From Magallana gigas (lineage: Eukaryota): 64,000 nt of DNA. The notes under the pieces were generated by a model. It was not told the origin of the DNA. It worked only from the letters and a program-made list of their open reading frames with translations, and ran no database searches. The first letter of the stretch is position 1. Every line of letters starts with the position of its first letter. This document shows positions 15,835-53,729 of this stretch, piece by piece. Position numbers and translations under genes: made by a program. The stretch is taken from NCBI RefSeq assembly GCF_963853765.1, contig NC_088857.1, positions 4,836,001-4,900,000 on the forward strand, given 5' to 3'.

Positions 15835-17390
15835 AATAGGTCATTGTATGGTAATAGTAGGGTATCGGTCATTGTATCGTAATAATTGTGTGTCGGTCAT
15901 TTTATTGTAATAATTGGGTATCGGTTATTATATTGTAATAACTATGTGTCTGTCATTGTATTGTAATAATTGTGTATCGGTCATTGTATTGTAATAATTG
16001 TGTGTCGGTCATTGTATTGTAATAATTGTGTGTCGGTCATTGTATTGTAATTATTGTGTATCGGTCATTGTATCGTAATTATTGGATATCGGTCATTGTA
16101 TTTTAATAATTGTGTGTCGGTCATTGTATCGTAATTATTGGATATCGGTCATTGTATTTTAATAATTGTGTGTCGGTCATTGTATCGTAATTATTGGATA
16201 TCGGTCATTGTTTTGTAATAATTGTGTGTCGGTCATTGTATTGTAATAATTGTGTGTCGGTCATTTTATTGTAATAATTGTGTATCGGTCATTGTATCGT
16301 AATTATTGGATATCGGTCATTGTATTTTAATAATTGTGTGTCGGTCATTGTATCGTAATTATTGGATATCGGTCATTGTATTTTAATAATTGTGTGTCGG
16401 TCATTGTATCGTAATTATTGGATATCGGTCATTGTATTGTAATAATTGTGTGTCGGACATTGTATTGTAATAATTGTGTGTCGGTCATTGTATTGTAATA
16501 ATTGTGTGTCGGTCATTTTATTGTAATAATTGGGTATCGGTTATTATATTGTAATAATTATGTGTCGGTCATTGTATTGTAATAATTGTGTATCGGTCAT
16601 TGTATTGTAATTATTGTGTGTCGGTCATTGTATTGTCGGTCATTGTATTGTAATAATTGTGTGTCGGTCATTGTATTGTAATAATTGTGTGTCGGTCATT
16701 GTATCGTAATTATTGGATATCGGTCATTGTATTTTAATAATTGTGTGTCGGTCATTGTATCGTAATTATTGGATATCGGTCATTGTATTGTAATAATTGT
16801 GTGTCGGTCATTGTATTGTAATAATTGTGTGTCGGTCATTGTATTGTAATAATTGTGTGTCGGAAATTGTATTGTAATGATTGTGTGTCGGTCACTGTAT
16901 TGTAATAATTGTGTGTCGGTCATTGTATTGTAATAATTGTATGTCGGTCATTGTATTGTTATAATTGTGTGTCGGTCATTGTATCGTTATTATTGGACAT
17001 CGGTCATTGTATTGTAATAATTGTGTGTCGGTAATTGTATTGTAAATATTGTGTGTCGGTAATTGTATTGTAATAATCGTGTGTCGATGTAGGTATTGTA
17101 ATAATTGTGTGTCGGTCATTGTATCGTAATTATTGGATATTGGTCATTGTATTGCAATAATTGTGTGTCGGTAATTGTATTGTAATGATTGTGTGTCGGT
17201 AATTGTGTTGTAAAAATTGTGTGTCGGTAATTGTATTGTAATATTTGTGTGTCGGTCATTGTATTGTAAGGATTGTGTGTTTGTCAGAGTAATGTAATAA
17301 TTGTGTATTGGTCACCGATTGTAAAAATTGTGTATCGGTCACCAATTGTAAAAATAGGGTATTGATCATTGTATTGTAAAACTGTTTATT
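15835..17390. repeat. 28-bp minisatellite (~55 units) with local 56-bp dimers
   Basis: Unit TCGGTCATTGTATTGTAATAATTGTGTG; the variant TCGGTCATTGTATCGTAATTATTGGATA alternates with it. Confidence 0.95.
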
Positions 17391-18129
17391 ACAGTATTTT
17401 GTAATTGAAAAACATGCATAATATTGGTCAATTTAAGAAGATTTTTATTGGCAAATTTTTGGTCATATATTAAGAAAAGAAGATACATGCATTATTGACT
17501 GAACACTTTTATTGAAACAGACTTATATTACATGCATAAAATTTGTCAGTGTTTTTAAATAGATAAATGACAAATGCATTACCAATAAATTGGTAATATT
17601 TTGAAATAAAGGATTTTGTTGTTGTATCAATTAGCTGGTCTGCTTTTATGACATGCGTTGAGATAATTAACCACGACACATGTTTCTATGCATGCTGCTG
17701 ATTACATAGTTAGCAGTGAGCGGAGTGGTTTGGAGTCAACAACCTCATGTTTTCTTTGAGTCATTTTAAAATATATATTTAATGGACGTATGGAGGATGA
17801 GTGAGGCCGATGCCCTGTTTTGTATGGTGGGCGTCAAACGAGTACAACGTTCTTCTTAATCTAGATAATCGATATCTGTTCGGGGGAAAAATCCATTCAT
17901 AGAAGATATTCATATCCAGGTTAAGATTATGTCAATCTTTTTGACAGTCAACTATGAATATTTTATGGTTACAATAAATAAAGAATTTATGTATATTTTA
18001 TTTGGAAAGATGAAAAACAAAAAAAAATTTCTCTTAAATTGGTATTCCCCTGAAGCGTGGAAGGCATTGATCGGTACCAAATATGTCATGTACGTTCAGA
18101 TTATCTAATGCTTACTAGATCTGGCACCA

Positions 18130-18260
18130 NNNNNNNNNNNNNNNNNNNNNNNNNNNNNNNNNNNNNNNNNNNNNNNNNNNNNNNNNNNNNNNNNNNNNNN
18201 NNNNNNNNNNNNNNNNNNNNNNNNNNNNNNNNNNNNNNNNNNNNNNNNNNNNNNNNNNNN
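18130..18260. other. Assembly gap (131 N)
   Basis: Run of N. Confidence 1.
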
Positions 18261-18799
18261 CAACAACTAAAATGAGTGTAAGTATGAATAACGTGTCTTA
18301 AAGATAGCTTTTCTTTCCTGTTTTAAGAAGTGTATAACGCTCATCAATTGGCGATTCCACTCACGGTGTATACCCACTCTTTGCCTGACAATCAATGCGC
18401 GGCAGTGAACGAGCGGTCAGTGACCCCGGGACATGCTCTCCTCGGCACTTAGTGAATGTCAAGGACGCCCAGTCGGGCTTTTAATGGGTCGATACCACTG
18501 AGAGGCACAATGATAGTGTCGTATTGCTTTAAGAAATGTGAGAGAGAGAGAGAGAGAGAGAGAGATATTGGGAATTATATTGTTTCAGAAAAAAAGAAAT
18601 GAAAAAAAATGGCACAATAAATTCATATCTATAAGTACAATACTTTCTGCTCCTGATGTATTCAATGGTGTCCTTTTTTAGCTTATCTCACGAAATAAGT
18701 TGTCTTCGAAAATAAAAATGCAGGAAAACACAAATTAATTAGATGCATAAGTATGTGTTGAGATAAATTATGCTACTCTCGATCGTTTGCTACATTCTG

Positions 18800-19118
18800 C
18801 AGGCACGTAGCATCAGGGGGGCCCCCACTTTTTTGGAAGTTATTAAAAAATTGATATGAAAATAAGGAAATGAGTAGTCAAATTGTAGTTACCCTCCCCC
18901 CCCCCCCGGAATAGGAGTTTTATGATTTGGAGGAAACAAAATTTTGGTAGGGAAGAATTTTTTTGGAAGTATAGTTGAGTTAAACCCCCCCCCCCGGATT
19001 AGGATTTTGAAGATTTTTGGAAACTTTAAATTTCTCTCTTTTTTTCCTTGGCAAGATTTTTTGGATGGGTCTGGCCCCCCCCCCCCCCCCCACTTTCAAA
19101 AACGATGCTACGTGCCTG
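18800..19118. mobile_element. MITE with CAGGCACGTAGCATC TIRs and poly-C/G tracts
   Basis: 15-bp perfect TIRs; flanked by the direct repeat TTCTG at 18795-18799 and 19119-19123. Confidence 0.85.
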
Positions 19119-19138
19119 TTCTGTCAATCTGAATGTGT

Positions 19139-19312
19139 ATCTCTTTTGATCGGGACCCCCCCCCCCTCGATCCCCCTCCCCTGTCCCTAATTGTACTTCC
19201 TCTTCCACGAAACGTCACTGACCCAGAGAAAAAGGCAGGGAAGTGTGAACATATATCTGATTATTACAAAGTACATGCATTTGTACATCAGTACTTCACG
19301 GTATGTCAGTAA
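19139..19312 (+). repeat. ~170-bp dispersed repeat, partner of 9462-9630
   Basis: Same shared motifs as listed for 9462-9630. Confidence 0.8.
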
Positions 19313-19464
19313 ACGTAGATTAAATATTGCCGAGTCCTCTACAGTATAGTATGTACATGTGTCCACTATCCACAAAGATAGGTGCATCTTTAACCAGTAC
19401 AATACCGGTATATGCTTGATTTTTTTTCTTTATTCCAACAATTAAATCATTTTCTGTGAATCCC

Positions 19465-19716
19465 TTGACTTTAGGCCTCTTCGTGGCAGGTGGCACATAA
19501 AGCAGCCACACAGACTCAGTCCCTCCAGGCAGCCCCATCCTTTGCTTTTGCCACCACTGTCCTCCGAGACAACTTTATCTTTTTCAGCTCACTCTCTACT
19601 GTTCTTCGCTATGTTGATTTTGGCCCGCCCCTTTTCCTTTTGCCATCGGCCGTCCAGAAGATGCTTTCTCTGGTAATGTCGTGCTGGTCTTTTCTGAGCA
19701 CATGGCCGATCCATCT
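19465..19716 (-). mobile_element. RTE-clade LINE, 3' end of ORF2, pseudogenised
   Basis: RWIGHVLRKD..ITRESIFWTADGKRKRGGPKST*RRTVESELK..AKAKD..W..VAALCA..HEEA*, a typical RTE C-terminus with in-frame stops. Confidence 0.8.
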
Positions 19717-19954
19717 ACACCCTTTTCTTGAGAACCATGCCTGTATAAAGGTAGCGAGCATTGCACTGACGAAAACAAAACCTACATTAGAGAGTTGTTT
19801 ATTTTCCCCCATGAAAATAATGAAGTAATTGTTGAGTCAAAGAACAATAGTGTCTGCATAAACATCACCTACAAATTAGTCTACAAGTTATGAAATTCTA
19901 TGTTTTACAAAACCTACAGCGACCTATAAAAATCATGGACTGCACAAAATACTG

Positions 19955-20833: not shown

Positions 20834-23800
20834 CTAAATTTCTGCTGTATGCGCAAACCCTACAGGGTATAGAAATGGTTGATCATATGTACAGGAATCA
20901 GCGCGTGATATTTCTTCACACTTAGTGTCTATCCCTTTGGCGAGTTGTCGCTCTTTCCTCTCATGCGTCTCGTTTTGAGTTCGTTTATCAGAGCCAATGC
21001 TACAAACATCGGATTCGTTTTTACTATCACTCTCACAATTATTATCACTCTCACAATTATATCCGTCAGTGGTATTTCTCAACGGTAGTGAGGGACTTTT
21101 CACTGACGGCGAAATTGGAGGACGATGTTCTAAATTGCACATTCCCTGAAAAGATTGTTTAAAGACAGACTCGTCGTTAAGGAACTGATCAACAGGGGGC
21201 ACTCGCCGCCGCTGCTGCTCCACGGCCAGCAGGAGCTGTCTGAGCGGTTCCAGGTACTCAAACCCATCCGAACCACTGAGTCCTGATTGGGTTTGGGTAC
21301 CCGTGGAGTGATCACAGTTTGACGGCTCTTTTCGGTTAAGAGTTTCATAAAAATGGTCTTGTACACCGGGTAGAGCGCCTTGGTCAGATGCCTGACACTC
21401 GACTCCATGTTGGGGTGGAATGTAGTTACTATCATGAGCAATCCGATTTACACTGTCACTAGCAGTCATTATTTGTTTAGAATCACAGGACTCTGGAATG
21501 CATTCGTTGGCTGAATTTGTATTTTCTCCCATAAACACCCAAGAAGTCACACGTTCCCCGGACAAATTCACGAGATTTGATTTCTTCTTCACTGGATATG
21601 GATTTTGCAAAATTACACTTTTTGGAGCTGCTTGAGAATCATTTTGAGACTGAACAATGTGAGTAGTTTTTACGCTTGGTACGTCCAATTTTAAGTTATT
21701 TTGTTCATGAGCAGGTGATTTTGGAGCATCGACGATAACTCCACTGTCGTTGGACTCATTGCTGTCGGTCTTGGTACACTGACACTTATTGTCATCACCA
21801 TCCAATCCAAATGTAACTTTGTTTCTGACAACATCACTCGGTTTTTTCTCCAGCTGATTGTAGAAGTGATTTTTAGTGTTAAGTTTTTCGAAGTTTCTGA
21901 TTTTGGAATGCATTGATTGGGAGTATTTGTGTTTGATTTCGTTGAACGCTTCAGAGGATGTCATGCTGAATTCATCATCGGAAGGGTAATCGTAGAATAT
22001 TCTTCTGTTTCGGACATCGCCATTCTCGACATCCACAACCAAATTATGCTTGTACAAGGAATCCATCTACATACAAAACAAAACAAAGACGTGAATCTCC
22101 ACTAAACATTTATGTATGTACATGATTGTACACGTATTGTACATAATACCGTACACATACAGTTTGTGATAGCCTATGACAGATCAACATGGAAGTCCCT
22201 AGTGACGGCCTTATTGTGCTAACCAGCACGAAGAGAATTAAGTGAGTACATTTATGATAATGTCTTTCATACAGGACTGTTGAATTATATTATTGCATAC
22301 CTGACTTGGAACAGACGGATATCGCTGTATTGACTTAGATCGGCATTGATAGACTATAGCAATAACTGTTGCGATCACAACAATGGACGTCGGCACAGCA
22401 ATGAGAGTTATCACTAAAGGATTGAACAGTCCTCCCCACCAACTGTCATCAGAGGGGGGCTCTTTTCTGGAGGTCAGTCTACTCACAGGAACTACCACCT
22501 GAAATCATTAAAAAGGAAATATTGTTAAAACTCATGGAAGGAAAAGCTGAAACAAGTTTTTTATTCCAAAGAAATAATACACTAAAAGGACATACTGGAT
22601 ATCCTAATATTGCGCTCATTTTGATGTCCGACATCTTTTGAAACGCCATCTCCGCGAGTGAGGCGCTGACCACTATCCCATTGTATGTTACAAGGAATAT
22701 GATTTCCACCCGCTCTCCAGACTTTCTCTTGATGTCTTTGATCTAAAACCAAGAAGGGACATCTCAGGTAAAGTTAAAATGCTTTAAAATTGAAACAAAT
22801 GTTTTGGGGCAAATGCAATACTTACTTTAACGAATATTCCAGTGTCTTTTGTTCGAGTTTTTGAAGAAGACCTGCGCCTTCGCTGAGACATCCCTTCAAC
22901 GTAGATTGTAGTGAGGCCTTGAATCAAAAATAAAAGTATTCATTAAATGCCAAACAAAATTTTGTTTTAAAAAAGCGAAATAGTAGTTCAAAAAATCTAC
23001 CGAGTCTTTCATACCTTCTTCTAGTTTTTCTTTAAAGTGTTCCTGAGAAATATCTATTCCTAATTTAACATCAATTTCAATGACAAGAAGGTTATTTTCT
23101 GGATAAGGATACACTGTTATTGACGGAGATGTCACTGCAACTGTGGATACAGTTGGTGGTAAAGTTGGTTTCGCTTTCAAAGAGACACCTGAACTTTCAG
23201 TGGATCCCGTGTCACTCGACCATTTCACTGAACTGTCAAATCTAATGTGCTCTGATGTTGATATAGTTGAGTCACTTGACAATTTCATTGAACTATCCAA
23301 TGTAATGTGCTCTGATGTTGACATTGTTGAGTCACTTGACCATTTCATTGAACTATCCAATCTAAAGTGCTCTGATGTTGAAATCGTTGTTTCAATTGAA
23401 TCTTTCACTGAGCTATCCATTATAAAGTGCTCTGATATTGAAATCGTTGTGTCACTTGAATCTTTCACTGAACTGTCCATTCTAATGTGCTCTGATGTTG
23501 AAATCGTTGTGACACTTGACCATTTCATTGAACTATCCAATCTAAAGTGCTCTGATGTTGAAAACGTTGTGTCACTTGAATCTTTCACTGAACTATCCAT
23601 TCTAAAGTGCTCTGATATTGAAATCGTTGTGTCACTTGAATCTTTCACTGAGCTGTCCATTCTAAAGTGCTCTGATGTTAAAATCATTGTGTCACTTGAA
23701 TCTTTCACTGAACTTTCCAATCTAATGTGCTCTGATGTTGATATCGTTGTGTCACTTGAACTTTTCATTGAACTGTCCAATCCAATGTGATCTAATGTTG

Positions 23801-26800
23801 ATATTGTTGTGTCACTTGACCCTTTTACTGAACTTTCCAATCTAATGTGATCTGATGTTGATATCGTTGCTATAGTTTTTATTGTCGAGGCATACAAATT
23901 CCAGTTGTAGCTGATTGTGGGTAAAAATGCAGATTCTGAAATGCTAGACTGAATTTCCGAATGATCACTTGTGTGTTTTTGCTGCAGATGTATGCTTTCT
24001 GAAACCCATTCGCTCCTTTTGGATGGTATGGCAGATAACATTTGGTTATCTTTCAAAGATTTGTCATTTGACAGACCTATCGTATCTGAATCAAACATCA
24101 CCGTTAAACTCGGCGTTTGAAGAATCTCCGGTGTGAATGTCGTTTGCTCTATCATTGCATTCGTTACTGCAATTTCATGAGTACCCAACATATCTTTAAT
24201 CATGGATGATCCAACGTATTTTGTTTCAAAGGGAGTGACCCCTCTTGAAAACGAGACTTCAAGTAGAGGTCGATCAGATGAATATAACGATGAAAAATAA
24301 ACACCGCTGCTTTCTCTATCAAAAACATCCGATTCTTCTTGAACTTTAACTGATAAGTCTGCATTTGTGGCGATTACACTAGAACACGACGTATGATCTG
24401 TGTTAACTTGGGACTGTACATTTGATCCGGCAACAGACATGACTACTTGACTCATAGTTCTAACAGCATCGTCGATAAGATGTGAATGAACACTGGAAAA
24501 ACTCGCACTAATTGTTGGAACATATATAGGATAACTGGACAGCAAATTGTTGTATGTCGTCCTTAAGTCTGATGTCACCTGGTACATATACTTTGTTTCA
24601 ATGGACGACTGAGCAGGCAGAGTCTCTGCATGTGATAAATTTTGTATTTGAGTATTAGCGTACATAGGCATACTTGATAATATCGATTGTGATGCAATTT
24701 CTGCATTATTGTAGTTGACTGAAGACATTATGGAATAATCTGTTGTATCTAATGGTTTTACGGTTCTGTTTTCAACTCCTCTTCTATTGGCAAATCTGGA
24801 CATTTTAGTATTAAGTGGCGTTTCTTCGGATGTAAAGTTCGAACTAGTTTTATCATAATTAACCGAAGACTCCATAGTCGGAACTGTCAGTTTGATCACA
24901 GTGCTGTTTAAGACACCAGATGAAAAATATCCCCCAATTGTTGAATGCAATGAATACCCCACAAGGTCCCCAAAACTGGAATGTATTAGAGCGGAAGGTT
25001 TGGTAGTCGTTGCATTACTAGTAGCAGAAGCAGTGCTGAGCAAATCATCAACTGTAGTTGGAAGTTTACTTTGATAGGCATAAATTGCATGGGTTTCTGA
25101 GCTGAGTTTGTTTTCCTTAAAACTACTGAGTAGATTGTAATCTGCTGAACTTGCTAATTGAGAGCTCATTGTTTTAACAAGTGTTTTGGAAAAGACGCTG
25201 CTCATCTGTTCTCCAGTTTGTTTACTCTGAGCGTCGATAGCTTCCTCACTTGCTGAAAGTGCTGATAACAATTCTGCAGAGTTATCAGTAGAGATGTGCA
25301 AAGGTTCTTTGGTGGTGGTCCAATGATCCCCATCCCCTGGGTCAGAGTTATAGGAACTCTGCAAATCTTGAAGTATGCTGCTATAGAAGGACAAAGTGAC
25401 GCTGGAATGTATGGTCTGTTTCACCGGTGATACTATCTGTTCAGAGGTGCCGACATGCACCGACTGAAACATAACCGTGTTGATGGGAGTTGCATTGAAT
25501 TCATCGTAGAAATAAAGTGGGGTTAACAGTTGGTCGCCTGGCGTATAATCAGTTTTCCTTTCTCCTACTTTTGAACTAGTTTTCCATGTATTTGTTCGAA
25601 GCACTTCAGTTGTCGATGAAAAATGACTTTCAGTAGTGTTTGGTTTTCTTACATCTAAACTAGATTTAATTTGATTTACTTGAAACTCAGATTTTGATGA
25701 AAAATGATTTTCCAGAATTCTCGACTCCTTTACTTGTATGCTAGATTGAACTACGTCGATAGAGTTTGTTTTTAACTCTGTCTCGGTTGATAAAGGATTC
25801 ATAATATTGTTCGATAGGGATTCTCTCTCTCGTAAACTAGATTTTATTTTTTCAATCATATCAGTTTGGAAATCTGTTGTAAAACCATGCTTTTTGGCTT
25901 TCGACTCTTCCATTTGTTTGACAGATTTCAACAGGGCAAGAGTATTCGTTTGAGGCAGTAAGTCGGTTGAAAAAAGATTCGCCTTAGTAATTGATTCGTG
26001 TGAAAAAGTTGGTGTTTCAATTTCATTTGTGTTAAATTCTGTTGTAAAATGATCTCCGCTAGATCTCAATTGGTCAAATGTATTTGTTTGAAACACTGTA
26101 TCGGTTGAAAAGCGAACATTCATAGATTTCAATTCCGTCTCTAGAGAACTAGATTTAAGTTTGTCTTTTTTACTTGTTTGGAAATCAAATGTAAAAAGAC
26201 TTTCCCGAGAAGTCGACTCTTCCACTTGTGAACTAGATTGCAGTTGGTCAATGGTATTTGTTTGAGACTTCGTATTGGTTGGAGACAGATTCGTCACGGT
26301 CATTGTCTCCTGTGAACTTGATTTCAGTTTCTCAATTCTGCTTGTTTGAAACCCTGTTGAAAAAGGATTAATTATAGTTTTCGATGCTCCTAATTGTGTG
26401 CTAGATTTTGATTTGTAAGTTGTACTTTTTAGATAACCAGTATCGGCTGTAAGTAGATTTATCAAAGTTTTTGATACTTTTACTTCTGAGGAAGTTTTAT
26501 ATTGGTCATTTGTATCTGATGGAAAATCTGAATTTGTTGAATAGAGATTCGTTGTAGCTTTCGACTCTTTCATCTTTAAGCTAGGTTCCAAAGCATCAAT
26601 TGAACTCGTTTTAAACTCTGTATCGAATGAAGAATGCAATGCTCTTTCCACAGCTTTAGTTGTATTTTCTTCTTTATGTGTACTTGTAGGGATAATTCTG
26701 TGGGTTTGGACAGAGGATGACATGATGGCGGATGTTTGAATTTGTTTGTTCGGAAGAGCAGTCATAGTGTCTGAATTTATAACATTACTGAAGATATTAT

Positions 26801-29800
26801 TTGAATAAGTGTCACTCCATGAGAGTTCTCTTCCCGTACTTGTTGATTCAGTTTCTTCTTTTTCAAACGGACTATAAGCAAGCCTGTCACTCTCACCAGT
26901 TGAATGAAAATGAGCAGTAGTAGGAATAGTTTCTGTTGATTTTGAAGAGTCCAGCACGTCAGATAATCCTAAGATGGTTGTTTCAGAAGGTTGAAGTAAA
27001 TGTTTGTCATATGAACTATCTTCAACGTAATACGCTGTATAGAATTCCAAATAGGTGGTGGAAATAGATGACGCAGATTTGTAATTTGTACTTGTTATCT
27101 CATTTTCTGCTATGTTCCCGCTTCCACCTTTGTTACTTTTTATAACCTGTATGGGAACTGTTGTCCTGTGGTTTTCGGTGAGAAGCACGTATGTCTCAGT
27201 ATTAAATGATTGTTGAAGTCCATAGGGTAGAGAGCTGTTATGACTTTCTGTTAAACTGTGCTTCGAGGTATTCATTGAAGAAACTTTAAAAGGAAGAGCA
27301 TGTTCAGTAGAAATTTTTGGCTTAGGAAACACTGTGTGATCCGATGCATGCGCGGTGGAATTAAAGTTTCCTTGTGTTTTGCTGCTACTGTCTTTTGCTG
27401 ATGATTTTTTCCGAGACGAGAAGAGTTTTGTGACAGTTTCTTTATGAACAGATGTTGGCCATTCGATCACAACCAGTGACTCCATAGGTGCGGACGGAAA
27501 AGTGTTAGAAATTGGTGCTGGTATTGGAGACAATATTTCATTCAACAGCAAGTCGGATGAAAATATTAAGGATGATGGATACAGTGTTTGGTCGCCTACA
27601 AACTTGTCGACTGAAGAAAACGAATGGTCAATGCCAGAGAATGATGTCTGCAACGAATAGGACAGTGTTTCTTTGTTAGAATATGATTTGAACGACTCGG
27701 ATGTTGAATAAGAGGAATGCGACATTTCAGCCATGTCCTGATTTTCCTGTAAAGAAGACACATTTGGATGAGGTAATAATGATGCCTTTGAAGATTTGGT
27801 TGGGGCTAGCTTTGTGTCAAGACGGCTCGATGATATTACTGAATTAATGTTTGAAAGTTGTGTGCTCATTGAGTTTAGTTTGGGTATTGAATCCATCCTG
27901 GAGTTACTGTTGTTTGTTCTCGGGTCTGAACTACCCAGTGTCGTGTCATTTTTATTTTGTCCCTCTGCCAAACTTCCCCGTACCAATGCACTCGAAGAGG
28001 TCCAAATTTGGTCATAGTTACTTGATGGGGTCTGTTTGTCAACTGCATTGACTAACGATGTGATTTCCGTGGCTGAAGGAGGTTTTTCTAAAAGCACAAC
28101 TATATCCGAGTATTCTTGATTTTGTGAGAATTCCGGATCGCTGGTATATTTAGAGCTTGAGATCCCGTACCAATCACCGGTAGTTTCCTCAAGTCTAGTA
28201 AACACTTCTGATGACGATTGTATGTATTGTAATGATACGTTTGATGTCCTTGGATAAGTGGTTGGATTAGAACTGGGCCCTGTCTGATTGGTCGAGAGAT
28301 ATTGCATTGATGATTTCAAAACTTCTGAAATAAAAAAAAAAAACCATATACGTAGCTGATTTGTGTTAAATGTATACAATATGTTGTCAATGTTTTTTCT
28401 TTAAAGTTTTGTGAAATCATACACATAAATATTAACACTTCACTAAAGTGTTTACTACGAAATCCACTTGACATCGGAAATTGTTCATCTACATTCGTAT
28501 CGATAAATCTAATGGCTAGAGATAAGTTGCCTTTCCATGAAAAATACGGACCAAATGACGTAATTTTGGCACCGTAATACTTGTAACTATTCGCTCTAAA
28601 GAATAATATGGGCCTATTAATTATACGATATTCAATGAGCAAGTTCAACACTTGAGGCTAATTACAGCTCTTGCTACAACCGATTTCACAGCACGCTGAT
28701 GCAAATGCGATCTGTAATAATTACCATGCTGAATTTGACACTTTTTAGTCGGGCTCGAAAATCACGCTGCAATAAAAGTAACGCACAATCTGATGGGAAG
28801 TCAATGATATTCCAGCAGGGATGAATCATAAAAATGCATTTCAAACAGAGCATCTGCCAAATTAAAGAAACAGTTCTGCTCAATATCCTGAGTATAGTAA
28901 GTCATGACTCAGAACTACTCTGGAAATCGTTAAAATTTTTAAAGCGTGCAATGAAAATAAATCTTATCGTATCAATCAGTGCAATTCATAAAAGCCGTTT
29001 GTTGTGTACAAAATTAATGTTTTTCTTGTGTATTCTACACGCAGTTGTATTTCCATGAGAAGCTCTCATACGTTGATTGACTGGGATTCCTAAGTCACGG
29101 CATCTACGATCTAGTCCATGTTAAACACTTAAAAGACTTTCTCCGCGACCTGAACCACTTGAAATAACGGAGCCTCTTCTATTTCAAACTTACTTCACAC
29201 AATTGTCACTTAGCCATTGTCAACAGGAGTCTCAATGCTGGCAAGTCAGGGAAATAAAACTTTCGCTTTTTGGGGGGCAGCGTGTGATAAAATTCTATCA
29301 GATTTTCCTATCAGAATACTACTGTGTAGTAAGTCTGTATATGATTCGCATTAATCCTATTTTAGAGGAGAAATTCAGTTCGTATAAAGACCGCATGGGT
29401 CCACATTTTATTCAGTCATCCGGATGAACCTATAAACCCAACGGACAATTTAAGGAGGAAAAGAACCCCAAAATCTCATATTATTTTCATTTTGTTTGAT
29501 GCTTAATAATACAAAATAAAATAAAAATATAACTTTCATGAGGCTGGAACAAGAAACACCCTCATCAATATGTAAGACAGATAACCCCTCTCGAACTGTG
29601 ACACTTTTATTATATAAGCTTCGTGTTTTTGGTTAATTAGTTGGCGAGTTGTTGTCGTATTCTCTCAAAGTCTCGGCAGGAAAACATTGAAATGGATGGG
29701 TTTTGATAAGACTCGTTCTAAAAACTCAGTTTCATTTACATAGCGTATGTTTTAAATGAAAAACTTCACAGCTCATTTCTGAGGTATTCAAATAATGTTC

Positions 29801-42692: not shown

Positions 42693-45615
42693 ATGAAGAA
42701 CTTGATTATATGGATTTTATTTTCAATCTTTCATATCATAAAATGTAAGTATGAATTATCTACATCAAAAATGTTGAAATATTAATTGCAATTTTTTTCC
42801 TGGAATTTGCTCTTTGTTCATAATATTAAGTAAATCAAAAATTCGATATCATTTTTTTATTCATAATGGAGAGATTGTAAAAAATATTAGCAGTTCATCG
42901 ATATTCGTAAGAAATTGGAAATCAGCATATCAAACGAACGAAAAAAAAATCTTTTCCAAATTCATAAAACTGTCTATTGCAAGCGACAAATATGTTTTCA
43001 TTTCATAGTTAGGGCGATCAAAGTTATAGCAGCAATTAACAAACTCATGATGAATCGAATGGACCATAAATGTCTTTATTCATCTTTTTAGGAGCACATA
43101 TATAGAACTGGTTGTCTAGCTAGATCTGTTAAGTTAAAAAAAAATTAAATTTTTACTTGGAACTGTAATTAGTATCACTTCCTTCATGTCTAGAATATAT
43201 TACAGTAATTACCGCTAATTTTGTCTGATAAGAGTTTTGTGCACATGATTTCTCGGTGTGTTGAATATGAAATTCATCGTTTCCTGACCCATCTCTGACA
43301 TTTACTTCATTAGCGGGAGAAATAAAAATCACAGATGATTCATGGCATGACATTTCAAAACTTGTTTATCTCTTCACTACGGTCAATTCACTCAATTCGA
43401 CAAATTAAAAATGAAAAGCGAGTCATGTTTTGCATACCAAAATATTTGTAGATGTTCTCGTAATTTGGATATATTTTTTTTTATTTTAGGCCAGATACCT
43501 GCAATATTTTTCCCTCCAAATTTTGTTCGACACGAGTTCCGCCGAATAGGACCGGAAGTGGACCCGGTCTGTCCGCCGCTACGCTGCGCTCCTGTCCCAG
43601 AGGGCTGTGCCCAGCCTCGCATTATAATGGTAAATGGACGACGCTGTCCGTTTTGTCCGAGAAACATCTGTACTGATTTGGAACCTCCTCGGGAGGGATT
43701 GGAAGGAAATAGGATACTCCTCTCCATAGCTGAAACTAATAGTCAAAGAGAAAGCAACAATTCACCCCCTACCTCAACAAGGGATACCGAACAGAGAACA
43801 GATAGACCACGGCCAGCTTCGCCACGATCCACTCCTAATGGCCGATCCTCTCCTGACCCAGACTCCCCTTTCTTTGCACCAAATGAACGACGAGTGGTGC
43901 GGACTGGGCGGCAAGGTGTGCGAGGGACACGTATAGACCCCCCAACTCGTCGACGGACACGTGTAGACCCCCCAGCACGTCAACGATCTGGGTCATCGCG
44001 GAATCGGTCCCCGTCGACAGGATCTCGAGCTCGCACCGGGGAAAGATCCAGATCAACCGACCCTTCTGAAAAACCACCCTCCAAAATTCAGCCAGTTGAA
44101 AACCAGCAAAACGCACATATTCTTTTTCCGCTTGAACCTTTTAGAGAGAACGTTATTAGTGACACCGAGCCAAAATCAAATAAAAACGAAAAATCTCAGA
44201 AAAGTGTCCCTGTAAAACCACCTGTCACACCGGCGCCAACCAAACCGATGAGCACACCGGCGCCCACACATGGCACTCGGTCCGGAAGGCAAGCGCGTCA
44301 GAATATTCATTTACTCTTCCATGCGCTGAACCGAATTGGATCTCAATCTCGAAATCAGCAACCTAACAACAACCAACCGAACAGACCTCCACAGACGCCG
44401 TTCCTCCCCCCTCTCCACGCCCTGGCAGGTTCTCCGTTCACGCAGGTCGTACAACAAGGCTCACAGAATAACAATAGACAGAATGGCGATACACAGTCGT
44501 CAAATCGACAGCGACAAGCTATAAACGGTATTCACCCTCTGCTGCCAATGTTCCTGTTACAACAAGCAAGACTAAATAGTCTTAATGCCCCAACTCCTAG
44601 CCCAGCACCGAATGCACCAAATGCTGCTGCACAGAATACTCCACAGAGAAACAACGCTCCAAATTTACAACATTTGCCTCCACACTTACGAGCCATGATG
44701 CCGTTTCCATTTTTCAATCCAGCAGCAAACCAACAAAATACAATTCCTGGAATGACTATGCAAGCCAACCAGGCGGGTCCAGCAAATGGTGAGCCCTCGG
44801 TTCCACCCGTCACTCCCACAGTACAGGCCGAGATCAACCAGTGGATGGACCAGATGGCGATGCCCATTCAGGAGGTTCTTGGAGAGGTTTCACCTTCACA
44901 GTCCGGCAGTCGGCAGCAGCCTAATCTTAACCAGATTCAGAGAAACCAGTTGACTCCTCCAGCTCAGCAAGTGTTAAATATCGGCCAACAACAGAATCCC
45001 CAAACACAGCAGCCAAGAATTCCTAATCAGGCATTTTTCCAGCAATGGCTACAGCAAATGGCTCTTCAACGACAACGTCTTGCTGCAGGACAAGCACCGG
45101 GACAAATGACGCCCCAAGGTGCTCCATCAAATCGAGCAACACCACAAACGCCGAATTCTAATCTTCTTTTCCAGAACATGGACCCGTCTCGAATGAATAC
45201 TGCTGCCCAGAACCCTGTAAACCCAGCGGCTACAACTCAGAATAATGCAGCGGGATCTAACGGTGGATTTACTCAGTGGTTAGATTCTCTTGCGACACAG
45301 ATTCAGCACCAACTCGAAGATGGTTCGAACCCTGTGCAACAAACAAACGCAATTCCTCAACAGTTGGTAAATAATATGCCACAACACTTGAATGTGATTC
45401 AAAATTTTAACAATGTGCCTTCGCCGAATGGGGTTGGGGGAGAAGTCAATTTTAATAACTGGCTCGAAAACATGGTATCGCCTATTCAACAAGAACTCAC
45501 TAGATCCCCCGGAAATCCCCAGGGGTCGCCTGCAAGGGGTGGGGCTGATATTCCAGCTAGTGCGTGGATTAATGAGATGGTAGATCCAATACAACAAGGT
45601 CTAGGAAGACGGTAG
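42693..45615 (+). CDS. Secreted protein (725 aa): 6-Cys module, then R/S/P-rich and Q/N/P-rich low-complexity regions
   Basis: Exon 1 (42693-42744; MKNLIIWILFSIFHIIK, phase 1, GTAAGT donor) plus exon 2 (43490-45615); module CPPLRC-x6-C-x12-CPFC-x4-C; ends QQGLGRR; AATAAA at 46013. Confidence 0.85.
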
Positions 45616-46373
45616 TTCATACCAACCTAAATCCAATCGTCACCAACGAAGGAAACAGAACTGTAACTACGTGACCATTTCTAACCAGTGAATCTTACCA
45701 ATTGTTTCAATGGCGGCGAAATGATCCGGATTTCATTACGTGCTTAGTTTTTAGAGATACATTGCAGAAGAGATTTACCGTCCATTGTTAAAATGCGTGT
45801 TAACGTTAGTTATGAGTTACCCGTATTTAAGTGTGTACTTGTAACATATAAGAGTATTATTATCGGATGTGTTCAGCATTCGTATAACTCGTTAAACATT
45901 TTATGTAACTACGTATATATTGTTACAAACTAAGTCATTAATGTCGTTTCGATTCTTGACTGACTTCTGTCGTTGTATATAGTTGTTTTCATTAATTTAT
46001 GGGATTGTTACAAATAAAATTAGTTTTACAATATGAGTTTTAAGTTATCAATTTCACAAAGCTCCTGACATAGTTTAGAGTAGCACACAAGACAACACAT
46101 GTCAGAGGAATTGCTACACGTCTAGGAGCGTCAAAAGTTCTTGTCTGTATTCCACTTCGTGACATTTGATTTCTCTGCTGTCAATGTTATATACCAAGCG
46201 GAAATTTATTAATCTTAAAACCTTTACAACTGTCAATAATGGGTAATGCAATCAATTATGTGACTAATAAATCGAATACGATTATATTACTGCTTCTTTG
46301 GACACAATCTTTGAATTGAATGAAGAGGTATTGATGATTTTTGTGTATCGTTCTGGAATAAAGCCGCCTAGCC

Positions 46374-47967
46374 TTATTTCCCTACCACTCCCACGTAAAT
46401 GTCATCTACATGCACAGTCACGGCATCACTCTCCTTCCCCAGGCGGTTCACGCCCCTCACGGCGTAGTAGCCGCCCTGTACCCCGACTTCCATCGTGTCC
46501 CTGTTTAACACGTGAACTAGTTCCCACACATCAGCCCTCAGGGCATACACAGCCCAGGACCTCACGGTGTGAAACGAATCAGAGGACCAGTAAAGCTTAA
46601 AGTCTGCGCTCGCGCGAACGTTTTGTGGTGATGAAGGAGCGGGTGCGGTAAGCCACGTCATTTCCGGTTGTAAGGCGGGTGTCGAGTATTCGCCTGATTT
46701 AAAAGTGTCGCCTATTCTATGAGTATTGTGCGAAAATGTTTTTGCACTGAAGAAAACGTTTCCCAGACTCAGTTGATCACGCCGGTCACGTGACAATTGA
46801 ACTTGTCGGACGAGCTCATTGACTGGCCATGATTTAACCACGATGGCGCTGGCGTAGTTTCCGGTATATAGATGGCGGTTCATCTTGTTTTGTTGTAACC
46901 ACCAGTCTAGCAGTGCTGGATAACTCTGTTGCGGTGGATCTATTTCCCAGTAGAGCTGTGGGGATAGGTAATCCACCCATCCAAGCTCAAGCCATTTCTT
47001 GGAATCAGCGTACAATGAGTCAAAACTCGAGAGTCCGTGGATTGTATGGGGGTGTCCAGGTTTCCAGATTCCAAAAGGACTGATGCCAACCTTAACGTGC
47101 GGTTTGATGGATTTCACTAGAGAGTATAATCCGTGAACTAGGGTGTTGACACTGTCCCTTCTCCAGTCCGCAAGGGACAGACGACCTCCCCCGGAAACGT
47201 ACGCCAAGTACGTATGGGAGTCCGGAAACTCTACTCCAGATACCGGGTAAGGGTAAAAGTAGTCATCCATATGTAGCCCGTCGATATCGTACCGCGTGAC
47301 CACATCCCTGAATACAGACAGGATGAAATCCTGAACAACTTTGGCCCCTGGGTCCATCCATAGGTTACCACCATAGGCGTATGTATAACGTGGAAACCTG
47401 TTAGCCATATGGTTTGGTGCCAAGCCTGAGGTTGAGTTACTACCACTCCGGGCTCTGTAAGGGTTAAACCAAGCGTGAACCTCCATGTTCCTCCTGTGTG
47501 CCTCCTGAACAGTGAATTCTAAGGGATCGTAATAGGGGCTTGGTGCTCTCCCTTGTCGTCCGGTGAGATAATAACTCCACGGCTCCAAAGAAGAATTGTA
47601 CAAAGCGTCACCGGAAGTCCTTACTTGTAAGACGATTGCGTTAAAGTTTTGGCTCTGCAGCCTGTCCAGCATGGAGTTCAACTCGTTTTTCTGCTGGTCG
47701 GTGGTCAGTGAGTGGGAGGACGGCCAGTCTATGTTCGCGACCGTGGCGATCCAGGCCCCCCGAAACTCCCGCACCGGCCAAGGCGAGCCGTCTGTAAACC
47801 GAAGTACAGAAATACAAACAACGAATCATAAAGGTGTATTAAAAGCATTAAAGGTGAAATGGTTAATATACATGTACATGTATTTAGCATTCATATGATA
47901 TATACAAACCTTGAACTGCCCGACAGACAGACATTCCCAGAACAAAGCCGATCAGTTTAGCCAGCAT
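46374..47967 (-). CDS. Secreted GHL10-family glycoside hydrolase (YddW/DigH/YngK-like), ~491 aa
   Basis: Signal exon 47967-47910 (MLAKLIGFVLGMSVCRAVQ, phase 1) plus exon 47791-46374. Motifs: REFRGAWIATVANIDWPS, YDPL..EAH..EVHAWFNPYR, RYDIDGLHMDDYFYPYP, GISPFGIW, GWVDYLSPQLYW. Poly(A) signal at 46205-46210. Confidence 0.9.
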
Positions 47968-48204
47968 TCTGTTGAGGAAAAAAAAACAATCTAAAAAATG
48001 CTTTATGAAATCTCTGACACGTGTATTTACTTCCTGTTGTCCATTATTCATAATGAACGTTATACATTTGAGTACTTCCTATTGTATGTTTTCTCTCCTT
48101 CATATCCTATGTTTTAAAACTGTATCTTGGAGTAGGTGTCGGGGTCTAAGGGTCTTTTAGGGATTAACAAAAAATAGTGTTGTCTATCGTAATGTACACT
48201 ACCT

Positions 48205-48338
48205 TGGTAAAATGTCAGTACTAGTGTAAAGGGAAGGAACCTCTCCTAGAATGTCGGAGAAGTGAGTTAATGTCGCCGTATGTACTACAGTCATGTAAAT
48301 AGGCCATACAGAGTTTTGGCGTGGTTTTATATATACAA

Positions 48339-48430
<92 letters not shown>
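48205..48430 (-). promoter_or_regulatory. Probable 5'UTR exon, TATA box and abutting (GA)~43 tract of the GHL10 gene
   Basis: Minus-strand TATAAAA at ~48325-48331, donor AAG|GTAGT at ~48204, CAG acceptor immediately before ATG 47967, and (GA)n at 48343-48429. Confidence 0.5.
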
Positions 48431-48432
<2 letters not shown>

Positions 48433-48563
48433 GTAAATCTAAGTGCTGCTAGACATTCATACACATGTAACTATATACTTCATAATATTTTATGCAACTT
48501 TTCAGGCGTATGATAAAAAAGTGGAAAACATAATTATATTATACAAATTTTGACTGAGGTTTA

Positions 48564-48667
48564 GGGCAACATTGGTCTTATTAGCCCCCGAGGGACGAAA
48601 TATTGCCCGACGCAAAGCGGAGGACAAAATATTCGTCCCAAGGGAGCTAATATGATCAATGTTGCCC
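48564..48667. mobile_element. Palindromic hairpin element, Crypton/Eulor-like
   Basis: Arms GGGCAACATTGGTC..TTAGC and GCTAAT..ATCAATGTTGCCC; centre CCGACGC-AAA-GCGGAGG, the same core as at 41230-41246. Confidence 0.65.
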
Positions 48668-49423
48668 GAAAACACAGTTAATATTTGTTTTGATATATGA
48701 AGAAACAAACCAATATCAAGAAAGGATTTGATAACAGATCGCCGTAATTCCCTCAGCTCAACATAGAATTCACGAATTCAGTTTTGTGCAAAGTCCATTT
48801 CCAAAATAATACCTTCTGGCGACGATATAAGAAATATTTTTTTGAGGGGGTGTGAATAAAAATGATCACCTTTATCGACAAGCAAGTTTATAGTATCTAT
48901 AATAATAACATTAAAAACAAAACTGAAGTATAACAATTTTTCCTTATATTTGACTATTTCATAACATGATGCGTTTCACAATGACGATAAATGAAATCAA
49001 ACACAAAGCTTTGAGAATATTCCTTCTTGTTTTTTTTAACTTATGTACTTTTCTCGACTATCCATCTTCATTCAGGAGTCAATAACACTTATTCAATTGC
49101 ACAATAAAGGAGATTATTTTATCTTCAAATATTGTTTTTTTCTACACAATACACAGAAATACTTCATTAATTCTTACCTTGTAGAGCGTACTACCTGGAA
49201 TATCTTCCTTTCCGATATAACCATGATAAGATAAGAAACGGAAAAGTTAGGCACAATATCCTTCTCTTATAACACACAGTAATCATATGTATCATAGTAA
49301 AGGTGTGTGAAGAAAATCAAAATCAAATTCAAAAGTACAATACAGGAGTAGAATACATTTTCCATTAATATTAATTTTTTAGCATTTAAACCTAATTAGT
49401 TTAATCAGAAAATCTCATATATT

Positions 49424-49425
<2 letters not shown>

Positions 49426-49476
<51 letters not shown>
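49426..49476. repeat. (TC)n microsatellite
   Basis: Read directly. Confidence 0.95.
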
Positions 49477-49647
49477 ATTTTTAAAGCAATATAACGCTAT
49501 CATAATGCCTTTTATGTATGTACCCTGCATACTTATCAGGACCTTTTTATCGATTACGCCATTTTTTAGTTATCTATCTGATTGTGTAACAAGGTTGCAT
49601 GGTATTTTTTAACTTCCGGATTACGAATAGATTTTGAAAAATTGGTC

Positions 49648-52600
49648 ATGAGTTCTGAAAATACGGAACTCTGCACAACCATACCTCGGGCTGCGAAGAC
49701 GACGGGGTGGCGATTTGCGGCCTCGGACAAGGAATACAAAGTGGACCAGTTTTATCAGGAATATCGAGACAGTTTTCCCTGCGTGGCCATTGTTACGCAG
49801 GGCTTTTTCGGCGACATAGGAATAGAGATCATCGGAAATGGAGAGGTAATATATCCGGATCATTGCTGATTTTCTGAGACATTTAAATTACCCTCATAAA
49901 TGCAGAGTAGATGAATAATCGAATTCACCGATTTTTTCAAATTTGATAATAATATTAAACATACAATGTACCTAGTTTATTATTATGTAGATACATTTTA
50001 ATAATCCACATAAATCTCACAATGAAAGATATAATACAGTTTACATGGGTTTTTTTTTATTTATCTTTGTCTCTCTTTCATTTTCACCAAATTTTAACGT
50101 CTTTACATAATTATGTATCTATGTCTTAAATAGTAGAATGTATATATATAAATATCTTTTGTGTTAGTTTTAAGTGTTTTGAGATACCACTAAACCAATA
50201 AAAGTCTGGAGATATGTTTGATCAATCACCGATACTGCTAAGAAACCAAGAAATGAACGTATTTTAGTTTTCTGTAACATAAAAGCAATATGAGCCGTAT
50301 TTTTTTTCGATTTATTTTCTTCGTTGATACACAATGCTTTTTAAGTTAAATCTAAGTATACATGTATATTTACGTTTATGATATATTATATTTAAACAAT
50401 ACGTTTAATATATTTTTTAGAAAAAAACTGTAGTATGAAATATATTTTTAAAAACGGGCAGAAAATTATGCAGCTTTATTAAAAAATGAAATTCTACCTA
50501 GCTTTTCCCACAAAAACACTACTTTATAAATAAACGATCATTCTTGTCATTTCAAAATATGATTCAAAAATCACGATTTTGCAATAAAATGTCCTGGCAA
50601 GAAGAAAGCACCTCACCTTTAAACTCTTGGTAGACGATCTACATCCAGCGGTGCGGTAGACAGCAGAGGGTGGTGGCAGAGGTTTTGTCTGGCCTGGGGG
50701 TCAGGCAAATCTCCATCCCTACAGCCTACAGGGCAAGATTCTGTATAATGGACAAGCATGGGGCCGGTGAGTTACTCATCAAAGTGTCACTATATTGACT
50801 CATCACTATAGAAGAGTTTACATTACGTATATCATATGGTTTTTTTTTCTATTTTAACATATTTTTGGGCATTTTCATATGAATCAATAGTCAATCAACC
50901 AAAATAACTCCCTGAATCAAAATGTCGGACAGTCTCTTCATATTTCAGAAAATTGTAATATTTTCCAGATTCCAGAGAATATCCTTTGGCTGAAATCTTG
51001 CGGCTGCGCAATCTACCGTGTAATGTCAAGTTTTCTCCTAAAAACCAATTTAACCTGGTGTCAGTCGAGGGAACCAATATGGCAACCAGCAACATCCGGT
51101 TACGTTTGCTGAGAACATACGATGAGCTGTACCTGGTCGGGAATCCTATCACAGAAAGTAACTATTTTCTTATATTGAGCAGATTCTATTGTTATAGTGC
51201 CTATTTTCAAGGCCTTTTTAAGAACAGTAAAGTTATAGATCATAGGAAACACAAATTATGCTTTGATATATAATAATTTACATATTACAACTGTAAACGT
51301 ATTATGTTGAGTGTAAATGAAATTTGGTGGAAATCGGGTTTTCAAAAATTAATCCTTTACTTGATTTAGAAAATTTCGAAATTTTGTTATTTATAGATAT
51401 TGTATGTACTTGTTCTTGATTTAGCGGGAGTTGCGTTCCGCCAAAAACGCTAACTATAATAACGCAGCCAAAAGTAATACAGAAGTTACAAAAGTACAAC
51501 GTTTATAGTAACCAAGATCACTCTAACAAAGCCAGTACCTGTAGGGTTTGGTGTTACGGGTTGTATCTACCTTTAAGTTTTACTTCTTGTATTTACTTTT
51601 TAGTTTTATCGGTTGTATTTACATGTTTCTTTTTCACTTTTAGTGTTACAGGTTGTATTTACTTTTGTGTATCATGTTGTATCCATTTTCTGTGTTACAT
51701 GGTGTATCCTCTTTCGTATTACAGGTTGTATCCACTTTCGATGTTACATGTTATATTCCCTTTCTGTTACAGGCTGTATCCACTTTTTGTGTTACATGTT
51801 GTATCCAATTTCTGTGTTACAGGTTGTATCCACTTTCTGTGTTACATGTTGTATCCAATTTCTGTGTTATAGGTTGTATTTCCTTTCTATGTTACAGGTT
51901 GTAGCCTTTTTTTCTGTGTTACAGGTTGTATCTACCCAGATCTGATGTTGGTACCGTTTTACCTGGAGGACCTTAGACTGTCCCTGGTTACCGGGATACA
52001 GGGCTTCCCTGGCCCATGGTCTTCCTATCTAAGTCATCTGTCTGTCGCCAAAGTGTCCGATTCCGCCAAGTTCGGAAATTCTGGTCAGTGACGTCTTTTT
52101 TCTGCAATGTCGCCACCCTCATAACCCGCATGAATCATCAAAAAATCATTTTATTGTTTCAATAAACTATAGAAATAGCACTTATTTGATCAATTTCATA
52201 CTCAAGGATTTGTTGTGTTTTGTTTGTATTACACGCTTTTCCTTGAATGACCGAGAGTATTTATTGCAAGATGACTACATACAAAATGATGATCACAGAG
52301 GAAAAAAGCATAAAAATTTACCTGCAATAAATTCGATATTTTAAGAACCTATTGTTGTTTTACCTTTGGTGAAATTGAAGAATGATGACATTATAAGCAA
52401 TATACGCCAATGTATGCCAGAACTTTAGCAGTCTACACTAACAGGTCAAATCGAAAAAAGTTCATCGATAATATCATTCATCAAAGTTCATCAAAGATTA
52501 TTTACTTGCTCGGTAATAAGGTGATATATCAACTTCTCAACGCAAGTTAAACGTCGAAATCCGACTATAAATCGCAGACAGGACCCGACGTTGAACAAAC

Positions 52601-53729
52601 TCGAAAACTCAACGTCATTCCCATATCAGCGTTGATTTAAAAACATAAAATGATGTTAATGTGCCTGCTGGGTATAATGGAAATCAGACCATATTTCTTG
52701 CTTGCCCGTCGAAAGACGATCAAATTGCGTTTCATTTTGATGATCTTGATAGTTGTAAACTACAGTATATGCATCTAAAAAAAGCATATGTGTGTAATTG
52801 CACGTGTAAATTTTATTGTAGATATTGCAGTATACAAGAAGACCGGTCTTAAGTCGTTTGAGACATCCAATGTCATTCCACAGACTTACCTTAGTATTGC
52901 AGATGTACGCGGCTCCATGGGACACCATTACGAAGACATACACATGAAACAACAAACCGACAAAATATACGACATACTCTGGGATGCTCATAGTGGCGTC
53001 CCTGTGATGAAAGAGAGGCCGATCGACAGAATGACGTCACGGGATAAAAGACCTAACCAGAGATACGTTGATTGGAAAGATGCCAAGTTGTCAGCTTCAG
53101 ACAGTAGTAAGTCAACTAGACAGTACGCTTCACGACCTTTGCCAAAGCCTCCTAAAGATGGAGACGATGAAACTAAAATCTCGAGACGGGTGAGCAAATT
53201 ATCACTCAGATCAAATGATATGCAGGATAAACAGGAGCAACAACCCACAGAGCCAACCATTAAAAGTGTTTCAGCCACCAAGGCCGATACCCAAGTACAA
53301 CCGCAGGACGAGAAACAACATCACGAATCTGGTCAGCACGAACATTCGAGAGATAGACAATCAGGCTTGACGAGCGAAGGGAAAGTTGACAGTGAACAAA
53401 AACCTACTATTGGGTCTAGCGAAGCTAATGTAAACAAAATACCTCCTCGGCCAAGAAGAAAGAAATCTCTGACTGAAGACTTGCTGGCGCCTGACCAGTC
53501 AGCGCAGCGCCGTGAGTTGGTACCACACATGTCTGTTTCGGACGTCCAGTATTGGCTGAAAGTGCTGAGGCTTGATCAGTACGCAGGCGCGTTTTTGGAG
53601 AATGAGATAGACGGCGCTCTTCTGTTGGAACTAGATAATGGCGTTCTGATAGGGGAATTCGGGATGTCTAAATTACACGCTATAAAACTCCGTAAGTTTG
53701 CTACAGAAGGGTATATGCCTCGGCAATAA
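49648..53729 (+). CDS. CABIT-domain + SAM-domain adaptor, GAREM/Themis-family-like (paralog A, ~523 aa)
   Basis: Exons 49648-49845, 50634-50766, 50969-51157, 51940-52083 and 52822-53729 (phases 0,1,1,1). CABIT-like FPCVAIVTQGFFG..QRVVAE..ISIPTAY..LVPFYLEDL..VTGI..W; HYEDI and IYDIL; RPLPKPP; SAM VSDVQYWLKVLRLDQYAGAFLENEIDGALLLEL. Confidence 0.8.
51552..51932. repeat. ~25-bp minisatellite in intron 3 of paralog A
   Basis: Unit approximately TTCTGTGTTACA(G/T)GTTGTATCCA(C/A)T. Confidence 0.9.

Follow-up and report, generated by a model that had tools for sequence, protein, structure and literature searches.

How did an oyster come by a gene for an enzyme of a bacterial wall-hydrolase family, and what does the animal do with it? 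The question is raised by a 64-kb stretch of the Magallana gigas genome (here called the window; NC_088857.1, positions 4,836,001-4,900,000 of assembly GCF_963853765.1), in whose numbering all gene positions are given. Its minus strand carries a gene for a protein of the GHL10 family (PF02638), described in an original prediction, made from the letters alone, as a secreted 'GHL10/DigH' enzyme that was either an old transfer from bacteria or a patchily retained gene. The gene is a functional one of the oyster, with three or more exons, and encodes a 491-residue secreted GHL10 glycosidase (secretion being predicted from the signal peptide). The gene probably goes back to a single ancient transfer from a bacterium to an animal, followed by vertical descent with many losses, and its product probably cleaves the glycan strands of peptidoglycan. 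The argument for descent turns on four introns of the catalytic domain, which occupy the identical alignment column in the identical phase in different phyla, deuterostome and protostome alike.

The encoded enzyme and its putative substrate

The coding sequence runs on the minus strand from 47967 to 46374 and, after one in-frame splice, forms 1476 uninterrupted nucleotides encoding 491 residues. The signal-peptide exon (47910..47968) consists of one untranslated nucleotide, the ATG at 47967 and the 19 codons and one base that it opens, and ends at the donor GT at 47909; its product (MLAKLIGFVLGMSVCRAVQ) is a short hydrophobic leader. The frame is resumed at 47791, directly behind the acceptor AG at 47793-47792, up to which the minus-strand open frame 46374..47774 continues in the 5′ direction. 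The main coding exon (46374..47791), across which RNA contigs are continuous, contains residues 20-491, hence the entire bacterial-like part, and the stop codon TAA (46376-46374). Intron 2 (47792..47909; 118 nt, phase 1) separates the signal peptide from the mature enzyme. Two transcriptome contigs lack it, and so do four raw reads, each with its own start, of a poly(A) RNA-seq run, which bears out the spliced signal exon proposed earlier. First mates map to the plus strand only, as expected of minus-strand RNA in a standard stranded library. A whole-genome scan with the Pfam profile returns this same match, GHL10 being single-copy in the 564-Mb oyster genome. Among named protein clusters, the closest is K1QLG8 of Magallana (Crassostrea) gigas, 'UPF0748 protein yngK' (97% identity), and public databases label the gene 'glycosyl hydrolase YngK-like'.

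The protein scores 238.7 bits against the GHL10 profile (cut-off 27.9; E = 1.1e-70) over profile positions 1-299 of 311. The HMDDYFYPY motif announced in the original prediction is intact, and the acidic core of this motif, Asp195-Asp196-Tyr197 (47267-47259), aligns with Asp195/Asp196/Tyr197 of Clostridioides difficile Cwp19. The signal peptide is followed by the GHL10 TIM-barrel catalytic domain (46842..47768), recognised by Pfam and by its match to Cwp19 in sequence and fold, and then by a beta-sandwich at the C-terminus (about residues 415-481; 46407..46607). Barrel and beta-sandwich make up the AlphaFold (AF2) model (predicted local distance difference test, pLDDT, 86.7; predicted template-modelling score 0.88), in which the strands of the sandwich lie at 398-461 in exon-2 numbering with a pLDDT of about 92-95.

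The GHL10 domain of Cwp19 is the only solved relative. Its entry 5OQ2 is matched by sequence with E = 8e-82, and Foldseek comparisons with 5OQ2 and 5OQ3 give E values of about 1e-36 to 1e-35, template-modelling (TM) scores of 0.87-0.88, root-mean-square deviations of 2.7-3.2 Å and 41% identity. Thirteen probable pocket residues are named in the paper describing the Cwp19 structure (PMC5765458), and all of these putative positions are identical in the oyster protein (W33, Q75, W127, R132, D195, D196, Y197, S257, Q298, Y300, G330, F367 and S368). The pocket traits are likewise present: Asp-Asp-Tyr after strand 4, Arg132, a glycine in place of the usual glutamate of strand beta-7, and the Phe-Ser cis-peptide site. 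The Asp195/Asp196/Tyr197 triad is invariant in 17 aligned sequences and likewise in 31, and the thirteen residues are kept in nearly all animal copies.

The pocket is identical, the protein is predicted to be secreted, and the animal itself has no wall. Most likely, therefore, the enzyme acts outside the cell on the wall glycan of bacteria, cyanobacteria included, in the service of digestion and/or defence. It would leave the cell and cut the beta-1,4 glycan backbone of peptidoglycan by muramidase-like or lytic-transglycosylase-like chemistry, for which the conserved Asp-Asp-Tyr/Arg pocket would be used. It would thus help to digest ingested bacteria and cyanobacteria and/or kill bacteria at epithelia, beside lysozymes. 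All animals known to carry GHL10 live on microbes, biofilm or detritus; this agrees with a role in digestion but proves nothing. Two characterised members of the family act on peptidoglycan material: Cwp19 digests peptidoglycan to 1,6-anhydro-muropeptides and is thus a lytic transglycosylase (PMC6016235), and Escherichia coli DigH degrades peptide-free (denuded) glycan strands (PMC12288456). Three considerations tell against this assignment. The putative peptidoglycan activity is extrapolated from these two bacterial enzymes, no animal member being among them; the cyanobacterial orthologues, the closest bacterial kin, contribute no functional evidence; and DogH, a GHL10 enzyme, is reported to free maltose from starch (PMC9967864), so that the substrate range of the family is unsettled.

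The starch activity reported for DogH belongs to another account, with the same gene history and a different substrate: the animal's own chitin (in the shell matrix or gut lining), dietary alpha-glucans, or the sheath polysaccharides of cyanobacteria or algae. Denuded peptidoglycan glycan is chemically near chitin, the fold neighbours outside the family include PgaB (poly-N-acetylglucosamine), chitinases and beta-amylases, and a diet of microbes or detritus would suit such substrates as well. This account is nevertheless unlikely, since the two best-characterised members act on peptidoglycan, the oyster pocket is that of Cwp19 at every listed residue, and animals without a chitinous shell matrix (rotifers, annelids and amphioxus) keep the gene.

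Shared introns, trees and the origin of the animal genes

Protein searches covered 5.8 billion proteins, the best 120 matches of each being listed. The matches came from oysters, other bivalves, limpets, abalone and amphioxus, with filamentous cyanobacteria immediately below them, at 53-56% identity to the oyster protein over 97% of its length. A search begun from a eukaryote-like contig added named proteins of the annelid Capitella, of heterobranch snails (Biomphalaria, Lymnaea and Physella), of bdelloid rotifers (Adineta and Rotaria) and of arthropods (Artemia, the fly Bradysia and the ostracod Darwinula). The GHL10 domain is present in all the animal proteins so added, and N-terminal signal peptides are found in most animal orthologues. 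A 297-residue GHL10 frame on a 1.48-Mb ENA contig (P0186), 61-65% identical to cyanobacterial proteins, is accompanied by sparse, short eukaryote-like gene calls and a carnitine-acyltransferase fragment, and its host is probably another animal. In amphioxus, Branchiostoma floridae has two tandem paralogues (L002, 1-5070 and 6001-11688), each with many introns. In the one examined, some 24 residues precede a long hydrophobic segment, and on this feature of its sequence the protein would be membrane-anchored rather than cleaved; a B. lanceolatum protein (P0035) has a classical signal peptide. The family, represented by 8182 clusters at 50% identity, is bacterial among the representatives checked for origin, except for the animal groups; at this level the animal proteins fall in clusters with cyanobacterial representatives, and a protein-atlas search returned bacterial clusters only. 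With homologues across phyla, the family is far wider in animals than had been assumed; an event at the level of molluscs is no longer tenable, and patchy retention is what the distribution displays. The absence of the family from well-studied model animals, suggested in the original prediction, is contradicted by none of the matches listed, although no search was aimed at it. A gene specific to molluscs and amphioxus, perhaps the result of two transfers, was abandoned for the same reason, on the annelid, rotifer, arthropod and heterobranch copies and the introns that are shared.

Introns were mapped on one alignment, in oyster numbering, from exon models in which GT..AG borders and a translation identical to the protein were demanded. 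The shared positions lie between residues 75 and 76 (phase 0; Branchiostoma, Capitella, Biomphalaria, Adineta and Bradysia, that is five phyla), in Arg132 (phase 2; Branchiostoma, Capitella and Biomphalaria), between residues 218 and 219 (phase 0; Branchiostoma and Biomphalaria) and in Gly272 (phase 1; Branchiostoma, Biomphalaria and Bradysia). For amphioxus and Biomphalaria, with 7 and 8 domain introns, the chance of at least four exact matches is about 2e-8, and 2.6e-3 if just 1 site in 20 can take introns. Bacterial donors have no introns, and the shared positions therefore date these introns to the gene from which all the animal copies descend, a gene that must be older than the protostome/deuterostome split. 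Introns common to five phyla argue for a single origin and great age independently of tree topology. A further phase-1 intron, at the junction of leader and mature protein, occurs in oysters (including Saccostrea), Mytilus, Patella, Biomphalaria and Branchiostoma; as a sign of shared origin it is suggestive, the region not being reliably alignable.

Heterobranch snail copies keep nine introns, while in bivalves and Patella the domain is free of them. Since orthologues in five other lineages share domain introns, the single 1.4-kb exon of the oyster is due to secondary loss. The original prediction was right that the whole domain sits in one exon, but this exon is not a bacterial relic. Recombination with reverse-transcribed mRNA removes introns while sparing those near the 5′ end, and is probably the process by which the domain introns were lost and the 5′ introns spared. 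The case calls for caution elsewhere, as an intronless, bacterial-looking animal exon can reflect secondary loss and not recent arrival.

Trees place the animal genes among bacterial ones. In a 192-row tree, animals and cyanobacteria form one clade (support 99) within bacterial diversity, and the same grouping is separated from outgroups with 100/99 both in the all-lineage tree and in a final tree from which six long-branch bacteria were omitted (P0176, P0238, P0141, P0164, P0143 and P0365). A metazoan clade in bacterial surroundings, as the original prediction anticipated, is thus recovered, and it appears to lie beside or inside the filamentous cyanobacteria. In the all-lineage tree, the topology constrained to keep the animals together has a log-likelihood 5.66 above that of the free search (p = 0.615 in the approximately unbiased, AU, test). 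Once the six long-branch bacteria are taken out, the animal copies come together in a single clade (85/44; 82% of bootstrap trees), whose basal split sets amphioxus against the protostome copies as a whole (85/94). Three short metagenome contigs (P0128, P0136 and P0166) fall within the animal clade; P0128 and P0179, mutually attracting long branches, had been omitted from the first careful tree and the AU tests, and P0128 was restored later. Heterobranch snail copies (P0377 and P0406) group with bdelloid rotifer copies (P0387 and P0419; 93/89) and not with other molluscs, which reflects either an old intron-poor paralogue in molluscs or long-branch attraction.

The history favoured here would begin with a single acquisition of GHL10 by the ancestor of Bilateria, from a bacterium near the filamentous cyanobacteria. 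The acquired gene would have gained a signal-peptide exon and several introns and been handed down vertically, with loss from most groups of animals; later, on the way to the oysters, and likewise in Mytilus and Patella, all introns of the enzyme part would have disappeared. The two options of the original prediction, an old transfer and a patchily retained gene, turn out to apply together. Well-supported bacterial-to-animal transfers reaching the bilaterian stem are rare and often disputed.

A part of the evidence pulls in another direction, and some of it would suit several independent transfers, at least into molluscs, amphioxus, rotifers, arthropods and an annelid, from related cyanobacterium-like donors, with the intronless oyster domain as the original bacterial state. 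The distribution is patchy, and bdelloid rotifers are known for frequent gene uptake. The amphioxus protein is 62-64% identical to cyanobacterial proteins versus 54-57% to those of molluscs. When molluscs and amphioxus were the sole animals, the careful tree was a trichotomy of molluscs (100/100), amphioxus (100/98) and cyanobacteria with six other bacteria (100/99), whose resolutions AU tests found indistinguishable, a union of amphioxus and cyanobacteria included (p = 0.40); a 78-row quick tree likewise left molluscs, amphioxus and cyanobacteria as a trichotomy. Backbone support for animal monophyly is modest (the 85/44 given above), a clade of protostomes alone is unrejected (p = 0.31), and the free all-lineage tree has a six-member clade of other bacteria, one of them named Methylacidiphilales, among the animal rows. 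Several of the shared intron sites, moreover, resemble proto-splice sites (for example CAG/GT at Gln/Val), which favours parallel gain. Repeated transfer is improbable all the same, as four same-phase positions are common to deuterostome and protostome copies while bacterial donors are intronless, and as the best tree found is the one that unites all animals; the phase-1 intron that recurs at the signal/mature junction points the same way, though suggestively only, given the unreliable alignment there.

If the gene were instead an ancestral eukaryotic one, passed down vertically and never transferred into animals, its history would require near-universal loss among eukaryotes and a cyanobacterial likeness of endosymbiotic or very old date. 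The basal split of the animal clade into deuterostomes and protostomes, the shared introns and the monophyly of molluscs, which is unrejected (p = 0.155), would agree with it. No non-animal eukaryote (fungus, protist or plant) is among the named matches listed, a negative that tells against this history, and no non-bilaterian animal is among them either; both negatives have their limit, as no eukaryote-wide scan was made and neither group was searched exhaustively, and this limit also weakens the case for transfer. Identities of 53-64% to cyanobacteria are, however, very high for a split older than eukaryotes, and the animal copies sit inside a family whose bacterial cluster representatives at 50% identity number more than 8000. 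Unbroken eukaryotic descent is accordingly very unlikely.

A single ancient transfer may also be given a more specific, and frankly tentative, form. One cyanobacterium-to-animal transfer before the protostome/deuterostome split would have given early bilaterians a peptidoglycan-glycan-cleaving enzyme unrelated to lysozyme, and its survival would be confined to invertebrates that feed on microbes (bivalves, limpets, abalone, pond snails, Capitella, bdelloid rotifers, brine shrimp, ostracods, fungus-gnat larvae and amphioxus). There it would form a part of bacterial digestion and mucosal defence that has so far escaped notice, and it may act on peptide-stripped glycans left by host amidases, the peptidoglycan recognition proteins (PGRPs).

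Transcript ends, neighbouring genes and constraint

At the 5′ end, one transcript contig joins 47968 to 49178, skipping the 1209 nt of intron 1 (47969..49177) between GT..AG borders on the minus strand. The 29 nt beyond the joint, the last of this contig, are the 3′ end of a non-coding exon of the 5′ untranslated region (49178..49206; minus strand), for which this single contig is the support. The donor reads AAG/GTAAGA, and the acceptor consists of a T-rich tract and CAG immediately 5′ of the ATG; Saccostrea shows a matching acceptor context 5′ of its own ATG. On this joint, the ATG exon is an internal exon preceded by intron, and the true promoter lies upstream of 49206. A TATA box near the ATG, taken in the original prediction for the promoter, sits within intron 1 according to this upstream joint of one contig; a promoter role is unlikely, and the candidate was rejected. 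The proposed poly(A) signal fares better: AATAAA is present at 46210-46205, about 165 nt past the stop codon, and the depth of the poly(A) library falls there from 7.2 to 0.8 between bins 46247-46445 and 46048-46246, though one transcript contig extends past it to 45950. Long (GA)n/(CT)n microsatellites occupy 48325-48440, in intron 1, and 49416-49483, just 5′ of the 5′ exon.

The divergent upstream neighbour is a spliced SAM-domain gene on the plus strand (49579-53729; joints 49843>50632 and 50765>50968), with SAM_1 in frame at 52788-53729; fewer than 400 nt separate its known 5′ end from that of the GHL10 gene, and the two may share a promoter region. The convergent downstream neighbour is a single-exon frame of 734 residues on the plus strand (43411-45615), rich in glutamine, asparagine and proline and without a Pfam match. 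In Saccostrea echinata these three genes recur in unchanged order, the gene without a Pfam match (about 729 residues) lying at 16651-19812 of its stretch L007, and the GHL10 gene there has a coding signal exon of 58 nt and an intron of 114 nt placed at the corresponding codon. Between the mature proteins of the two oysters, the proportions of non-synonymous and synonymous differences are 0.10 and 0.73, which corresponds to a ratio of the two rates (dN/dS) of about 0.04 with dS saturated. The GHL10 gene is under purifying selection. Elsewhere in the window, a minus-strand frame of 1827 residues (22896-28379), without a Pfam match, is rich in serine and threonine and mucin-like; it includes 11 copies of a 60-nt (20-residue) tandem repeat at 23209-23869.

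Chromosomal integration beside conserved host neighbours is thus found together with eukaryotic gene features and transcription. The coding sequence has 51% G+C in a window averaging about 35%, a difference that by itself might suggest bacterial contamination or an assembly artefact; this has virtually no chance of being correct and is ruled out by two spliceosomal introns with RNA support, a eukaryotic signal exon, animal genes on both sides in the order found in another oyster genus, and orthologues in chromosome-scale assemblies of many molluscs. The adjacent host exons are equally G+C-rich, and base composition is as non-diagnostic as the original prediction held it to be.

Comparison with known wall hydrolases

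Among bacterial relatives, Cwp19 (PDB 5OQ2/5OQ3) resembles the oyster protein in its Pfam family, its TIM barrel (TM 0.88, 41% identity), its thirteen putative pocket residues and its secretion. It differs in its three CWB2 cell-wall-anchor repeats and in being an autolysin that acts on its own wall; the oyster protein begins with a eukaryotic signal peptide and has a C-terminal beta-sandwich, and it belongs to an animal that possesses no wall to be remodelled. In Bacillus subtilis YngK (Swiss-Prot O35015), both the barrel and the C-terminal beta-sandwich are found, and its predicted structure aligns with the oyster model across residues 7-462 (TM 0.88). DigH (YddW) of E. coli shares the family and the catalytic barrel, and offers a plausible substrate class; the match is confined to the barrel, however (residues 1-365; TM 0.68, 33% identity), the C-terminal domain being unmatched, and DigH is a lipoprotein of the division septum. 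The architecture of the oyster enzyme, as modelled, is YngK-like and not DigH-like, and the label 'GHL10/DigH' overstated the closeness, since YngK and the cyanobacterial proteins align over the full length. Orthology with DigH was set aside, DigH being a distant paralogue. The nearest relatives in every tree are the cyanobacterial GHL10 proteins (Limnospira, Okeania, Microcoleus and Oscillatoria), alike over 97% of the length at the identities given above; they have no introns, and many copies add N-terminal SLH domains (PF00395), which bind the wall, or long leaders.

A literature search found no paper describing the GHL10 family in any animal, and GHL10 is not among the eleven transferred amphioxus genes of a 2026 study. 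An uncharacterised animal enzyme family may act on bacterial walls beside lysozymes and PGRP amidases, which bears on the digestion of bacteria and cyanobacteria by filter feeders and, in aquaculture, on the interplay of oysters and Vibrio. As the enzyme can be expressed and assayed without difficulty, the hypothesis is directly testable.

Other wall hydrolases have entered animals from prokaryotes and their phages. Chou and colleagues reportedly described, in 2015, dae/tae amidases domesticated in ticks and other animals. The phage-type lysozymes of bivalves are domesticated phage wall hydrolases (PMC5303276). Like GHL10, both are prokaryote-derived wall hydrolases equipped with a eukaryotic signal peptide and introns and kept under selection; unlike it, they belong to other enzyme families and stem from lineage-specific transfers, while the origin favoured for GHL10 would be single, much older and earlier than the bilaterian split. 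Oyster GHL10 would add a new and unusually old case to the known domesticated wall hydrolases of bacteria and phages.

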